Below are positions 3,733 through 61,097 of a stretch of DNA of 64,000 nucleotides, in pieces. The notes under the pieces were generated by a model that saw only the letters and a program-made list of their open reading frames with translations, was not told the DNA's origin and made no database searches. Within the stretch, counting starts at the first letter, position 1. Every line of letters starts with the position of its first letter. This DNA is from Octopus sinensis (Eukaryota): NCBI RefSeq assembly GCF_006345805.1, contig NC_042999.1:166284001-166348000 (forward strand), given 5' to 3'. A program made the position numbers and the translations under genes.

Positions 3733-4172
3733 AAGATAAGAAAATGGAGAAATACATCTAAATCAAATATCAATTATCAGATAATACTCAATCACAGACT
3801 TTATTAAACCACCACATAAGAGACTGTAGGGTTAAACATAAAAAAGCAGAACAAATCAGTGTACATAAAGGAATGTACATAAAAAAGTGTACATAAAAGA
3901 GTAATGTTGAATAATAAGTAGAATATATATAAAAAAGAGAATATAAATATAAGTAAATATAAATATAAGTATAGATTACATCTTGCAGCTGTTTCGGCCA
4001 TGTAGATAAATATGTCTCATTTTACCAATATTAGCCTTTTTATGTACACTGATTTGTTCTGCTTTTTTATGTTTAACCCTACAGTCTCTTATGTGGTGGT
4101 TTAATAAAGTATGTGATTGAGTATTATCTGGTAATTGATATTTGATTTAGATGTATTTCTCCATTTTCTTAT

Positions 4173-29639: not shown

Positions 29640-29963
29640 CCCCGTTTTACTCTTTTACTTGTTTCAGTCATTTGACTGCGGCCATGCTGGAGCACCGCCT
29701 TTAGTCGAATCGACCCCAGGACTTATTCTTTGTAAGCCTAGTACTTATTCTATCGGTCTCTTTTGCCGAACCACTAAGTTACGGAGACGTAAACACACCA
29801 GCATCAGTTGTCAAGCAATGTTGGGGAGCACAAACACAGACACGTAAACATACACACACACACACACACACACAACACACACATATATATATATATATAA
29901 TATATATGTATATATATATATATATAATATATATATATATAATATATATATATATATAATATA

Positions 29964-30028
<65 letters not shown>

Positions 30029-30190
30029 GACGGGCTTCTTTCAGTTTCTGTCTACCAAATTCACTCACAAGACTTTGGTCGGCCCGAGGCTATAGCAGAA
30101 GACACTTGCCCAAGATGCCACGCAGTGGGACTGAACCCGTAACCATGTGGTTCGTAAGCAAACTACTTACCACACAGCCACTCCTACGTC
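29640..30190 (-). mobile_element. SINE family A with expanded internal (CA)/(TA) tract
   Basis: Both conserved halves flank about 190 bp of microsatellite. Confidence 0.88.
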
Positions 30191-30213
30191 TACATTTTGT
30201 TCAAGCTTTTATT

Positions 30214-31551: not shown

Positions 31552-31958
31552 TATGCATATACATATATGTACATATGTGTGTGTATGTATATATATAGAG
31601 AGAGAGAGAAAGAGAGAGAGGGGTGATAGGGATGCAGATAAACACGCTTGGGCTTGATATATAAATACACATGTATACATATACACATGTAGAAGACATA
31701 TAGGGATATATAGAGAAACAAAAATTAATCACAACCGTTCGTATGTTTGATTTAATAACTTAGTACTACAGTTATAATTTGCGAAAGTAGATGTGGAAAA
31801 CAGTTTTTTGAAATCCTCTCAAAACAATAAAACACTGTCGAAAGACCAATAAAACTGCTATTCATGTTACTGTATGTATGACATCACTAAACACCATGTG
31901 ATATGTAGTCTATATAGTACAATATATTTTTATGTTTACAACAAATTTAAGTGTACAG

Positions 31959-32234
31959 TGTAGTAGGGATGATGAAAGGAGCACAACAGAACAAGGAAAA
32001 GGAAATAGAAGTGCAATTAGGTCTTACCTGACCGGGGATGAAGTCGGATGGCCTTCAGCCAACTTGCTAACGTCTTGTCGTCTTCGTGCCTTCCTGGGGT
32101 CTGAGCCAACTCGTCGATACCGCACGTGCGTTCTGTCTCTCACTTCCGCTTCCGCCGGCGCATGCGCCCTGCAAGACCTGCAAGCCCCACTTCCGCTCCC
32201 CCATTCCGTCACACTCCTTCATCATCACACCACA
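31959..32234 (-). repeat. 3' LTR (276 bp)
   Basis: Identical to 35419-35694 except at 32119/35579 and 32209/35669; imperfect ~22-bp terminal inverted repeats. Confidence 0.97.
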
Positions 32235-32270
32235 CGCCCCCCTGATCTATAGATCACTGAACCGGCTTCC

Positions 32271-34614
32271 TCACTCGCTCCCGCACCTGAAACTGGTTTC
32301 ATAATCAGCCAACCAGGGAGGAGGGTGCCGCTCCCTCTGTGGTCGCAGCGCGACCCTAGGACTTGTTTCTGGTGTGTTGCTGTCGACCTCGTCATCCTGT
32401 CGGTTGTTTTCGTCTTGCCCACTGTTGCTTGTCCCATCCTCTGGGGCATGGACAATCCTCCGTATGTCCAAAACGTGGCGTGGCATACCATCGATCGAGA
32501 TGTTATTCTTTGAATTTACGGAGGTTATTGTCCCCTTTCCCCATTGCGATGTACACCGTGCGTTTGGGGGTTTTACCCAGACTTCCTCCCCGACCTGCAC
32601 GAAGGCGTGCTCTTCCTCTGCCCCGGGTCGCATTGATGTAGTACACGGATGCCTCCACTCGTACCTGAATATTGCCCTGTGTGGCACCGATTCCTCAGCC
32701 TGTCCGGATCGGGGAGACAAGTTGTACCAAAAAACTGCTTCAAGCGGCTAAATGTGCCCTCTTTCCGCTATGGCCTTGACTGTCCGATGGTGCCTCTCCA
32801 CGATCCCGTTACCGCCCGGCCTATACGCTGCTCTGAACAAGCGTCGCACGTTCCACCGATCAAGCATAACCCTCAATGCTTCCGAACGAAACGCCGCCCC
32901 GTTGTCCATCAGTAGTTCTTCCACGGGACCTCTCTCTAAAAATATCCCGTTCAGGATCTGCACGATCTCGTCAGCAATGCCCGATCTCAACTCCCTCCAA
33001 ATGGCCAGTCGGCCCGGCCCACAGTCGACCATGGAGAAGTACATTCGCTGACGGTAGTGTGTCACATCCACAGCTAGCCTTTTCCAGTTCTGCTCCACGG
33101 AAAGGCTTCCCTGTTCATACCCACACGGAGCAGGGTCGATGGACTGACACCTGTCGCAGCTCCCGACCACCTTCCGGACGCTTCTCCTGGTCACGTCAGC
33201 ATCAATCTTTTTTGCCAGATACAGGGTCCTGTCCACACCCAGGTGATGCATAGCGTGCAGTTTCTTCAGTTCAGAGTCATCCAACCGACACGCCGCAGCT
33301 ATCCCTTTCCGAGCCTCCTCCGGTTCTTCCAACCACGCCCTTTTCACCCTGGTCAGTACGTCCGCCTTGTTTTACTCCGAAGGCACGAAGACCACGTTCA
33401 GCTTCAGTCCGAATTCGGCGATCAATTCACCTAGAACTCCTAGACGGCGCTTCACTAACATCTCCGCAGCACCTTTCGTCCGCACTCTCCTGTCACCGGT
33501 GATCACCGATCCTACCCAGCCAAGCACAGTGGCCGAATCCGTCCGCATTTCAATCGTGCGCAGCCCCCATTTCAAGGCCAAGTTCACCCCTTTCAGCAGC
33601 GCGTCTAATTCGGCGACATTGATGTGGTTGAAATCATCTGCTTTCCGAAGCCAGGCCGCGTCCTCCACCGCAGTGCCTTCGATTGCCAACACCACCCCTA
33701 TCGCTATACTGCTAGCATCACACCAGACAGTCCCGCATTTCGTCCTGGGCACGTACCAGTTCCCCCTGACCGGGTCTTCCGCTCTTGTCCTCTCTAGGAT
33801 CTCCTGCATCATCGCCACCGTCCCTTCTCCCACCTTGTCGCCCCACCTCTCTCCTTCCGCTCGTCTCTTGGTGTAACTACACGCCGTGCGCAGCCATCCA
33901 GCGATCGGGTAGTGACCGACCAACTTCCCACACACCGAGAACAGCTCTCTCCTGCTGACGCTGGAACTCATCTCTTTGATTTCATTTCCTCTCCGGAACA
34001 CCAATTCACCTGATCTATCTCTTCGCAGCTTCAGCCCCAGCGCGGCTCCCCCTTCAATCGACTCCGGTAGCTTAGCAATCAGTCCGAACTTCTCCAGATG
34101 TCTCACCACCTCGTCGGCTGGCACTACAGTTTCGTCCACCAAAATGTCGTATATGTAGGAGCTGACCATCGAACGCCGCCTGAAAGTCTTTGTCCTCGAT
34201 GGTGTAAGCGGCGCAGTCCCTCGCGGGGCTCTGCTCCCTCTGGCGATCCTGACTCGCAGTGCACGACGCCCCCACGCTTCCGAACGTGACATCATTTCCC
34301 ACAACACTGACGCCACCGAGGCAGTTGATGGCGTCCATCCCCATCACCACATCAATTCCATTTATCACGCGTTCGGCCACAATTGCCTGTAGCCTTAGCG
34401 TCGCGCCGCGCACCACTATCTCTACCTTGCTGCTGCCTCTGCAACGGATTTCGCTGCCGTCGACCGCCCGGACACTACACACCCCGTTCCATTCCTTCGT
34501 CACCCTCGAAGTCACCAGGGTGGTCGTACAGCCCGTATCCACAAGGGCCTTGAACGTCTCCCCCTCGGCCTCCACGTCAATCAATGGCAGTGTCTCCAAT
34601 AGCGCCTCTACTCG
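32271..34614 (-). pseudogene. pol: disabled pol: aspartic protease, RT remnant, RNase H, DDE integrase
   Basis: Protease ALVDTGCT and DVVMGMD. Most of the RT is deleted near 34165, with YIYD in place of YxDD. RNase H WCDAS..HINVAEL..TDS. Integrase H-x3-H...CxxC, D...D-x35-E. In-frame stops at 33372-33374 and 32748-32750. Confidence 0.9.
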
Positions 34615-35372
34615 TTAGAGGGGAAAGTTCGAGAGGCAGCAACTTCCCCGCGGTCGTTTCCCTGGCCGCAATCACGGGCAATGTGCCCTGTCTGCCTGCA
34701 TCGATAGCAAACGGGCCCCGGCTGCGTACAGTCCCGCGCCATGTGCGGTCCCTGGCATTTAAAACACCGTCCTGAGAACGGCCGCTCTCGTTGCACGGTG
34801 GGCTTCCGTACCTCTTTCTCGGGACGTCGTCCGTCTTTACGCGCCTCCGTCACCGCCATCGCTATCGCCTTCCGCCCCGAGTGTTTCGTCAACACGCGAG
34901 CATGAGTTACAAGTTCGCTCAATGGCATCTTTTTGACCCCGGGCAGTCGTTGTAGGTGAATCCCTACATCATCGGGGAACCCATTCACGAACGCCAGTCG
35001 GGCTGCTCTCTCCAGTCCTTCTCCGGCAAACCCGGCCAGAGTCGCTAGCCTTCTAGCTTCCGATGCAAAATCATCCACCTGGCCTCCCGTCCACCTGATT
35101 GCACCCAGCTTAGCGAAAGCTGTGTACTCGCATTCCGTGTATGCGTCACACAAGCGCCGCTCTATATTCCCATCGCAGAGCCGTTCTTTTTCATCCATCT
35201 CTAGGTAAAGCGACAACGCACTTCCTTCCAAATACAGCGCCATAAGACTCGCCACGTCGCTTATGCCCTGCAGTCTCGCCACCAGCCTGATTTTCTGAAT
35301 CCAGGCCACTACATCGCCTTCGCCGTTAAAAGGTCTGACGACGTCACTGGCGATCCTAACTTTTGCAGACAT
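34608..35372 (-). CDS. gag: Gag of the LTR element (254 aa, intact)
   Basis: ATG at 35372 (MSAKVRIASD...); no internal stops; two zinc knuckles, CFKCQGPHMARDC and CYRCRQTGHIARDC. Confidence 0.9.
   Translation of the reverse strand: MSAKVRIASDVVRPFNGEGDVVAWIQKIRLVARLQGISDVASLMALYLEGSALSLYLEMDEKERLCDGNIERRLCDAYTECEYTAFAKLGAIRWTGGQVDDFASEARRLATLAGFAGEGLERAARLAFVNGFPDDVGIHLQRLPGVKKMPLSELVTHARVLTKHSGRKAIAMAVTEARKDGRRPEKEVRKPTVQRERPFSGRCFKCQGPHMARDCTQPGPVCYRCRQTGHIARDCGQGNDRGEVAASRTFPSNE
34620..34662 (-). promoter_or_regulatory. -1 programmed ribosomal frameshift signal
   Basis: Slippery heptamer G GGA AAC in the gag frame (34662-34656), a 6-nt spacer, then a stem GGGGAAGTT/AACTTTCCCC. The protease frame is -1 relative to gag. 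Confidence 0.75.
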
Positions 35373-35406
35373 CGTGTTGAAAAAAAAATGTGAACGCTGA
35401 CGAACT

Positions 35407-35418
35407 GCCGAAATAGCT
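35407..35418 (-). other. atypical primer-binding site complementary to tRNA-Phe nt 1-12
   Basis: The + strand reads GCCGAAATAGCT directly against the LTR; this is the 5' end of conserved metazoan tRNA-Phe(GAA), recalled from memory. Confidence 0.7.
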
Positions 35419-35694
35419 TGTAGTAGGGATGATGAAAGGAGCACAACAGAACAAGGAAAAGGAAATAGAAGTGCAATTAGGTCTTACCTGACCGGGGATG
35501 AAGTCGGATGGCCTTCAGCCAACTTGCTAACGTCTTGTCGTCTTCGTGCCTTCCTGGGGTCTGAGCCAACTCGTCGATGCCGCACGTGCGTTCTGTCTCT
35601 CACTTCCGCTTCCGCCGGCGCATGCGCCCTGCAAGACCTGCAAGCCCCACTTCCGCTCCCCCATTCCGCCACACTCCTTCATCATCACACCACA
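35419..35694 (-). repeat. 5' LTR (276 bp)
   Basis: Direct repeat of 31959-32234; lies upstream of gag on the - strand. Confidence 0.97.
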
Positions 35695-35826
35695 TACAGT
35701 AAATTAATCGAGCTCTCTTTAAAGGGATAATTTAGAAAACTTATTCTTTGAGTCTGTATTCACGAATGAAATAACTTTTCATTTAATCTCTGGCGACCCT
35801 CCAACTGGAAGAAGTTGATACTGGAC

Positions 35827-40234: not shown

Positions 40235-40451
40235 CTCTTACTCTTTTACTTGTTTCAGTCATTTGACTGCGGCCATGCTGGAGCACCGCCTTTAGTCGAG
40301 CAAATCGACCCCGGGACTTATTCTTTGTAAGCCCAGTACTTATTCTATCGGTCTCTTTTGCCGAACCGCTAAGTGACGGGGACGTAAACACACCAGCATC
40401 GGTTGTCAAGCAATGCTAGGGGGACAAACACAGACACACAAACACATACAC

Positions 40452-40535
<84 letters not shown>

Positions 40536-40687
40536 CAGTTTCCGTCTACCAAATCCACTCACAAGGCATTGGTCGGCCCAGGGCTATAGCAGAAGACACT
40601 TGCCCAAGGTACCACGCAGTGGGACTGAACCCGGAACCATGTGGTTGGTTAGCAAGCTACTTACCACACATCCACTCCTGCGCCTAT
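40235..40687 (-). mobile_element. SINE family A, full length
   Basis: Near-identical to 4991-5407. Confidence 0.9.
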
Positions 40688-42869
40688 AGGTTGGAATTAT
40701 CGTATAACTGTGTCCGGGTATGCCAGGAAGATGAGGTGTGATGTCATCTGTGTGTGAGGAGTCTGTCTGTGTGGTTTATAAAGTTATACGTGCTGGAAGT
40801 TTTTATCTTTTTGAAGCTATTGTGCATTTTCTGTATTAAATTTGTGAATATTGTAATGGTTAATCGTAGTGACCAGAATCGTATTGTGATTTGGAGAGAA
40901 CGTGATGGATGGATTTGTGATGTAAAAGATTAGCCTGAAGTGAGTCGGGAAAGCTAATTGTATTGCCACGGCATAGTACAGTTGTGCTATGGCATACTCC
41001 AGCCAATCAGTGCTGGACGCGTAGGAATGCAAAAGGCAGTTATCTGCCCTAGCAGAGAAGCGGGAATTATTAGACAGTTGTTGAACATTATTAGGCAGCA
41101 ACAGTTCTTCTTCCAACATGAAACAGTGTTTGTTCACCGCCAACTTGGAGTTATATCGGCTCTCGACTTGTCACCTCCAGAACAGCCTGAGTTCATTTAT
41201 GCTAACTTCATTCCTCGAAAGTCTGGATGATATAAGCCACAACTCTCCTTCATAATGAGCTGTATATTTTCGTTTAAGCTAGCTTCGTTCCTGTTAGATT
41301 ACAGCGGCTTCCAACCTCTAGGTACTTGTCAGCGCTCGTTCCTATTTTAATAAAGTTACACATGCTTCTCAAAAGTGCATTTGTCACAAACACTTTCATA
41401 CTTTAAATTAGTGACCACCCTCACGAAAAGCCATTCTAAAATGTTCGAGGATGTGTATACAGAAATTTGGGGCCTATATTCACTTGGATTTCGTTGGGTT
41501 TTAGAAGTGTCACGATTTCATAATAGTTTCCATATTCTGGGGAATTTGAGAGTGCCGGTAAGTGTAGATGTTGGTGATGAGAGCGATCAGAGACAGTAGG
41601 TCAGATAGCTCCACCAACATATATGATATGGAGGAAGTCACTGATTCAAGGAACGAGGGAAGGATAGAGATTATAGGCAGACAGTTTTGACATGAGATTC
41701 GAGTGCCATGTATAGTCGAAGGTTGTTGTTAGTGGCTGTCTTTATCATATTTGAGCTGCTGGAAGTGAATATGATCCGACGATAGACGGCAGAGTCGAAG
41801 AGGCTTCCGTTTTAGAAATAAACAGCAGCATGTTTATTTTTCTTGTTGATTTTTTTCTAAGTTTCGGTTTATTTCTTATTGTCATTTTATAAGATTTTGC
41901 TGGCAAATTCTTAAATTAACAGAAGCATTTATTTACATTAAAGAAAATTACAGTAGAACTTTCTTCTGTTGAGTTTTGTTTCGGTTGTGTCTAATAAAGT
42001 TAATCTTGGTTTTATGAGATTGTTGTTATTTTTGAAATGAATTTATCTATTTCTGATGTATCAGGTGTATTTTTTGTGCTGACTTATGAAATTAGGCTTA
42101 GTTGATGCATTATAATAATCATGTTAAATATATGTACTACAGTATCAAAGTTCCATTCACGGAGGGGGTTTTTTTGTCTTTTTTGTTATATTTTCATGTT
42201 TACAAAAGTGAATTTCTTCGTTGTTGAGTGAATTTATTGTGATTTAGTGAGTTAGTAAGGATAGTTTACGATATGATATGAAAGGATTTAATTTATCACC
42301 ACTAAAACGTGAATGTTCCGTCAAAACAAAAATTACAGCGGTAGTTACCATGAGAGAAACTCTCGTATTGGCTTTTGGTGCAAAAGTGCACTCTTGATAA
42401 TGTCACTAGGATGCATCGAATGGAATTTTAGTTGCGATACTATTTTTATGTTACCTTTTTTGTTATCTGTACAATTTGAAAACCAGAAGCCATCGAATGA
42501 AGTCTCCTATAAATAAAGTGGTTTGTAATATTGTTTACATGTTGTAGATGGTGTGTGTAACCAGGTGGGGCCATTTCTGAGGTCGGAAGTAATATATTTG
42601 TTGCATTAATATGCTTTGTGGTGCTGGCTTTTATTTCGAAAGCCTATATTTCTAGTACAGTGTCATTGCCTATTATTTTACTGTCGATTGTAATATTTAT
42701 ATGTCGTATGCTTCTGTCTGTCCATATTTCTGTCTGTTAACCAAGCGTATATGTTCATATTTCTGCTGGATTAAGTATGTGCCTTTATTTATATCTTCAT
42801 ATATGTGTTTGTTAGCTAAATATATGTCCTCATTTCTATTAGTCAGCAATGTGTGCGTGTGTATGTGTG

Positions 42870-60878: not shown

Positions 60879-61097
60879 CCCTTTAGTGTCCAGATTATTC
60901 CATCAAACATAATGCCTATTGATTCCCATTGATTTGAATTAATCATGCATTATCTCATATCTTCAAGATCTTGATGGTGTAATTACTTAATGTAGAATAA
61001 CATTGTAGGGTAGGTGTGAGAGCCTGGATCTGGTCAGTTTGAACATAAAACAGATTAGCTATTTTGGCCGGATATGGCCAGTTTAAATACTAAAGGG
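60879..61097. mobile_element. piggyBac-type MITE (219 bp)
   Basis: TTAA at 60875-60878 and 61098-61101; TIR CCCTTTAGT / ACTAAAGGG. Confidence 0.8.

Follow-up and report, generated by a model that had tools for sequence, protein, structure and literature searches.

A compact LTR retrotransposon from Octopus sinensis with a putative primer-binding site complementary to the 5' end of tRNA-Phe

The window, the 64,000-nucleotide stretch of Octopus sinensis DNA that was analyzed (GCF_006345805.1, NC_042999.1, positions 166,284,001 to 166,348,000), holds a 3,736-bp LTR retrotransposon on its minus strand. It is the only copy in the window, and its parts, in window coordinates and in the order in which they are read on the minus strand, are as follows.

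35695..35699 (-), 5' copy of the 5-bp target-site duplication, CTGTA on the minus strand
35419..35694 (-), 5' LTR, 276 nt, TGTGGTG...CTACTACA
35407..35418 (-), putative primer-binding site AGCTATTTCGGC, flush with the LTR
35373..35406 (-), 34-nt leader between the 12-mer and the gag ATG at 35372, not conserved in relatives
34608..35372 (-), intact gag open reading frame, 254 aa, with two CCHC zinc knuckles (Pfam zf-CCHC)
34165..34563 (-), protease (DTG) region of pol (aspartyl protease Pfam hits), ending at an internal deletion that removes most of RT
33372..34175 (-), remaining RT C-terminus (YxDD region), DUF7047 (2.1e-23) and RNase H (RVT_3), closed by an in-frame stop codon at 33372-33374
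32295..33371 (-), integrase (zinc-binding and catalytic core; Pfam Integrase_H2C2 and rve) and C-terminal region, interrupted by an in-frame stop codon at 32748-32750
32235..32248 (-), polypurine tract AGATCAGGGGGGCG, directly upstream of the 3' LTR
31959..32234 (-), 3' LTR, 276 nt
31954..31958 (-), 3' copy of the target-site duplication, CTGTA

The LTR boundaries are fixed by the 276-nt direct repeat 31959-32234 / 35419-35694, whose two copies differ at two transitions, and by the flanking target-site duplication (35699..35695 and 31958..31954). Alignment of an intact relative's pol by tblastn shows that residues about 131-302 of that protein, most of RT, are deleted, with the junction near 34165-34175. 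The insertion is therefore young but non-autonomous, and this copy cannot carry out any of the steps proposed below on its own. A search of Rfam with 31800-35800 returned nothing.

The 5' LTR ends ...CATCATCCCTACTACA, its last base being 35419, and is followed directly by AGCTATTTCGGC (35418..35407), with no spacer and no TGG anywhere between the LTR and the gag ATG. The interval 35407-35420, singled out by the original prediction, is therefore the 12-mer plus the terminal CA of the LTR, and the feature seen there is confirmed. The complement, GCCGAAATAGCT, occurs exactly once in the window, against a calculated expectation of about 0.008 on both strands. It equals the first 12 nt of human tRNA-Phe(GAA), as shown by the published forward primer GCCGAAATAGCTCAGTTGGGAG (PMC10505166), and the first 12 nt of Drosophila tRNA-Phe, as shown by the published 5' probe GCTCTCCCAACTGAGCTATTTCGGC (PMC7038984). 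That the host's own tRNA-Phe has this 5' end is inferred from these two sequences, as ARAGORN found no tRNA gene in the window or in the element-bearing loci. One-mismatch copies of the 12-mer lie at 3987-3998 and 61057-61068, and there are 8 matches at up to 2 mismatches in the window against 3 expected, but neither one-mismatch copy has an LTR or gag next to it.

The element has many relatives. The window's gag has 34 homologues at 36-52% identity, and an intact relative's pol has more than 880 relatives at 48-63% identity, almost all on ~4-kb contigs from marine and other metagenomes or from Logan assemblies; one is from the porcelain crab Petrolisthes manimaculis. No relative of the pol was found in the IMG/VR viral contigs. 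Among the encoding contigs that were retrieved (L numbers below denote retrieved contigs), four elements could be read with both LTRs: the window copy, L013 (the crab copy, with 100% identical LTRs), L135 and L136. These are 3.7-4.65 kb long overall, have 5-bp target duplications and share the same polypurine tract; intact relatives are 4.2-4.6 kb. L004 and L005 are the same element assembled in two unrelated ENA assemblies as 4,191-nt contigs that are circular permutations of each other, each with a 119-nt terminal overlap, which reflects either an assembly cycle with one LTR collapsed, as in several of the 4-kb contigs, or sequencing of 1-LTR circles.

Ten other independent elements, with gag 36-52% identical to the window's and 43-57% identical to that of L006, carry AGCTAT-NNN-GGC immediately after the LTR. 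The LTR end, the 12-mer and the next bases read as follows.

Window: ..CTACTACA / AGCTATTTCGGC / AGTTCG
L004/5: ..AACTAGA / AGCTATCTAGGC / AACATG
L006-8: ..AACCACA / AGCTATCGAGGC / GATTAA
L009/10: ..ATCCATA / AGCTATCTAGGC / TTTTAC
L011/12: ..AACTATA / AGCTATCTAGGC / GCCAAA
L013: ..AACTACA / AGCTATCTAGGC / CTAATT
L134: ..GACCACA / AGCTATCACGGC / AATATT
L135: ..TACTACA / AGCTATCCCGGC / CTTGAT
L136: ..TACCACA / AGCTATCTAGGC / AATTAT
L201/2: ..TTGTACA / AGCTATCGAGGC / GTTTCT

Nine of the twelve positions are invariant, and only the three bases opposite tRNA positions 4-6 vary. L001, an old copy that is among the window's closest gag relatives (52% identity over 63% of the query), reads AGTTATTTTGAC, which is the window's 12-mer with three transitions, whereas L002 and L003 are too decayed or truncated at the 5' end for a site to be read. 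All four elements with both LTRs have zero spacer. No element has a TGG site between the LTR and the gag ATG, and the leaders are only 3-65 nt long. Nothing is conserved after the twelfth base, where the sequences cannot be aligned. The LTR end is not complementary to tRNA nt 13 onwards; inspection by eye of its possible pairing with tRNA nt 13-22 found only a 7-bp imperfect match, in the window alone, that is not conserved.

The variable triplet was compared with tRNA-Phe genes in sequence scans. A metagenome scan for tRNA-shaped sequences starting GCCT[A/C]GATAGCT returned mostly bacterial tRNAs, 72 of 118 of them Phe(GAA), and two eukaryote-type tRNA-Phe genes with no encoded CCA. One of these, on L023, starts GCCTAGATAGCT and has the animal tRNA-Phe body; its contig carries intron-split SLC12A9 exons whose best named relative is an insect and whose close relatives are metagenomic sequences, which narrows the host only to an animal. 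The other, on L070, starts GCCTCGATAGCT. In further scans with the eukaryote/archaeal tRNA-Phe body fixed and positions 4-6 left free, eukaryote-type genes were found with GAA, GTG (L150, L152, L174, L176), TAG (L137), TCG (L192), GCG, GGA, CAG and GCT, most on short contigs mis-binned into bacterial MAGs. Eleven of the 64 possible triplets were seen in total. Four of the five primer-site variants (GAA, TAG, TCG and GTG) fall in this set as exact complements, for which a rough binomial estimate gives p of about 0.004; the fifth, GGG in L135, has no matching tRNA-Phe in this limited sample. This co-variation is between pools of sequences rather than within single genomes. Moreover, a eukaryote-looking tRNA-Thr(AGT) on L125 also starts GCCTCGATAGCT, such that the identity of the tRNA as Phe is not proven for the sister families.

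The element belongs to a large, mostly marine-invertebrate clade. At the protein level this clade is neither clearly BEL/Pao nor clearly gypsy. Like these elements it has gag with CCHC knuckles, the order PR-RT-RH-IN, a 5-bp target-site duplication and TG...CA LTRs. The Pfam families that mark BEL/Pao (Pao_retrotransp, PF05380; DUF1759; DUF5641) are absent even at E<=10, although all three are present in a genuine BEL/Pao element at L136 1-4197 (minus strand), about 0.6 kb upstream of the 5' LTR of the clade member there, which served as an internal control. A collinear but weak RT-RNase H alignment to a genuine BEL/Pao pol was found (20% identity, E=3e-7). RVT_1 scores fall below Pfam's cut-off (17-27 bits against 29.6), and there is no hit to the gypsy-type RT_RNaseH family. 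Among solved structures the integrase is nearest to betaretroviral integrase and the RT to MLV RT, both weakly. The clade is instead marked by its small size, by a 60-aa DUF7047 between RT and RNase H, and by an RNase H that matches the cellular/retroviral-type families RVT_3 and RNase_H in L006, L009, L011, L135 and the window copy, an arrangement reminiscent of the tether-plus-acquired-RNase-H layout of retroviruses. DUF7047, the flush AGCTAT-NNN-GGC and the polypurine tract AGATCAGGGGG characterize the window copy and L004-L013, L134-L136 and L201.

The best explanation, held with moderate confidence, is that the minus-strand primer is the 5'-terminal 12 nt of tRNA-Phe, comprising the acceptor 5' strand, U8, A9 and G10-U12 of the D stem. 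What the sequence itself displays is the position of the site, its exact 12-nt extent, the lack of a spacer, the polypurine tract and the target-site duplication; the binding of tRNA-Phe, its cleavage and its use as a primer are inferred from sequence alone. In this view, the zinc-knuckle region of Gag would anneal tRNA-Phe to the site, displacing the tRNA's own 3' acceptor strand and D-stem partner. A cut after U12, exactly where the duplex ends, would give a 12-nt RNA with a 3'-OH paired to the base next to the LTR, and RT would extend it straight into U5. Plus-strand strong-stop synthesis would then copy the short primer to its 5' end, which would explain why conservation stops sharply after 12 nt and would allow the site to be rewritten to the host's tRNA-Phe. 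The only modification expected within nt 1-12 of eukaryotic tRNA-Phe is m2G10, which should not block RT. However, a 12-nt fragment is shorter than the usual classes of 5' tRNA fragments. The most economical guess for the nuclease is the element's own RNase H acting on the RNA:RNA duplex, as shown for Tf1 (Levin 1996, cited in PMC4600332) but in trans, and it is favored because the required 3' end coincides with the duplex end in every family. A host-made 5' tRNA fragment is the alternative.

The interpretation given in the original prediction is partly supported. Its core reading, a site complementary to nt 1-12 of tRNA-Phe that is neither a TGG site nor a self-primer, holds, and two of the three conditions set beforehand as able to overturn it, a conventional TGG site in relatives and a match of the 12-mer to the element's own transcript, were examined and came out in its favor. 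The co-variation with tRNA variants that it called for is also seen, between the sequence pools described above. Its suggestion that the element's RNase H makes the cut remains a conjecture, and the animal tRNA-Phe 5' end that it gave now rests on published human and Drosophila sequences. A further claim, that the downstream RNA echoes tRNA-Phe and could aid strand invasion, is not supported: TTTCGGC is necessarily the complement of the 5' acceptor strand, and the CAGTT and AGCGTT motifs have no counterpart in any relative.

Several other readings were weighed. Self-priming of the Tf1/sushi type, in which the 12-mer pairs with the 5' end of the element's own transcript, is suggested by a site that is flush with the LTR, 11-12 nt long and without TGG, as in Tf1 and Tj1 (PMC4600332), but is very unlikely and was rejected. 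The complement of the 12-mer is absent from the window element's LTRs at up to 2 mismatches and from whole sister contigs at up to 3 mismatches outside coding sequence. When G:U pairs are allowed, the best 12-nt LTR match (9-10 pairs) is reached or exceeded by 55-90% of shuffled LTRs in 8 of 8 elements, and a self-primer would not be expected to keep 9 of 12 bases invariant across families with gag only 36-57% identical. Chance resemblance in a decayed element has only the shortness of the motif to recommend it and is refuted by the comparative data, as the exact 12-mer falls at the single functionally relevant position and recurs in 10 independent elements.

It is also possible, though unlikely, that the primer is a different host RNA whose 3' end or 5'-terminal 12 nt reads GCC-NNN-AUAGCU, such as another tRNA (Thr, Lys or Asn) or a non-tRNA small RNA, with the match to tRNA-Phe partly coincidental. 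U8-A9-G10-C11-U12 and a GCC start are shared by several tRNA species, and tRNA-Thr, Asn, Lys, Arg and Met genes with the TCG or TAG 12-mers exist in metagenomes, including the tRNA-Thr(AGT) of L125. On the other hand, tRNA-Phe is, to our knowledge, the only animal tRNA that starts with the window's own variant (PMC10505166, PMC7038984), Phe(GAA) is by far the commonest among tRNAs carrying the TAG or TCG 12-mer (72 of 118), and four of five variants have a eukaryote-type tRNA-Phe counterpart. Equally unlikely is a role of the 12-mer in binding tRNA-Phe or in some other cis function (packaging, dimerization, translation control), with priming by an unrecognized route. Direct evidence of priming is lacking, and since intact tRNA has no 3'-OH at nt 12, an extra cleavage step must be assumed. 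However, the motif sits exactly where every LTR element has its primer site, no alternative site exists in the short leaders, and the conserved block ends precisely at the tRNA's nt 1 and at the LTR end, as a primer copied to its 5' end predicts.

Three primer types are listed for LTR retroelements: the 3' end of a whole tRNA, a half-tRNA cut in the anticodon stem, and a self-primer (Neumann et al. 2019, PMC6317226). The site described here fits none of them. In conventional priming (retroviruses, Ty1, Ty3, gypsy, BEL/Pao) a host tRNA is, as proposed here, the source of the primer, and a site directly downstream of U5 tracks a specific tRNA, but here there is no TGG and no complementarity to the tRNA 3' end; the site in fact has the same sense as the tRNA's 3' acceptor strand (TTTCGGC). 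In copia, 1731, Ty5 and the plant Osser/Bryco/Bianca lineages the primer is, as proposed here too, a 5'-derived fragment of a host tRNA produced by internal cleavage, not the CCA end (Kikuchi 1986; PMC6317226). Those Ty1/copia elements use tRNA-iMet or tRNA-Ile cut in the anticodon stem, giving a fragment of about 39 nt whose 3' part (about nt 25-39) pairs with the site, whereas here the tRNA would be Phe, complementarity covers nt 1-12 and stops there, the cut would be in the D stem, the domain order is PR-RT-RH-IN rather than IN before RT, and there is no RVT_2 hit. In Tf1, Tf2, Tj1 and the Tf1/sushi group the site is similarly short, flush and without TGG, and the primer is the 5'-terminal segment of an RNA that must be released by an endonucleolytic cut at the end of an RNA:RNA duplex, made in Tf1 by the element's RNase H (Levin 1995/1996, cited in PMC4600332). 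Here the complementary 5' end belongs to a host tRNA and no complementary segment lies in the LTR; the pol is not chromovirus-like, with no chromodomain and no gypsy-type RNase H Pfam hit.

The proposed mode would be tRNA-fragment priming with a new tRNA, a new cleavage position and a new clade, working like a hybrid of the copia and Tf1 modes. Full-text literature searches, including searches for the site sequences themselves, found no description of this site or clade, although older subscription papers on BEL-like and other invertebrate elements lay outside their reach and prior description cannot be excluded. A bolder and only tentative reading is a fourth class of primer for LTR retroelements: a whole clade of compact invertebrate retrotransposons would anneal the 5' end of tRNA-Phe, cut it after U12 with its own cellular-type RNase H, in effect Tf1 chemistry applied in trans to a host RNA, and copy the 12-mer back such that the site is continually re-set to the host's tRNA-Phe acceptor sequence. 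Such a mode would link the two exceptions mechanistically, using a host tRNA as in copia and a 5'-terminal ~12-nt segment released at a duplex end as in Tf1. Annotation pipelines that look for TGG-type sites would score these elements as lacking a primer site, and the defense by 3' tRNA fragments that target such sites would not recognize them. tRNA-Phe and a 12-nt site would also offer a defined substrate for asking how a retroelement RNase H can cut RNA in an RNA:RNA duplex, and the variable acceptor-stem triplet might serve as a marker of the host lineage of such elements in metagenomes.

The scans for tRNA-Phe also recovered eukaryote-type genes in a tandem array with a 3,738-bp period (L142/L144/L160, contig CBDDFR010000002.1, labeled as a Gracilimonas MAG) and a cluster of four copies that includes pseudogenes (L155, a 1.37-Mb contig labeled as a Denitrobaculum MAG), probably eukaryotic host DNA mis-binned into bacterial MAGs. 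The tRNA-Phe of Thermoplasmata archaea (contigs within L138-L200) starts GCCGTGATAGCT and shares the D-arm and anticodon-arm sequence of eukaryotic tRNA-Phe almost exactly. In the window, two pairs of direct repeats, 29708-29826 / 40303-40421 and 30042-30199 / 40536-40693 (93% and 89% identical), lie about 10.5 kb apart, each next to long (AT)n/(AC)n microsatellites that fill much of 25-50 kb; they look like copies of a dispersed SINE-like repeat or a segmental duplication that brackets the neighborhood of the retrotransposon.
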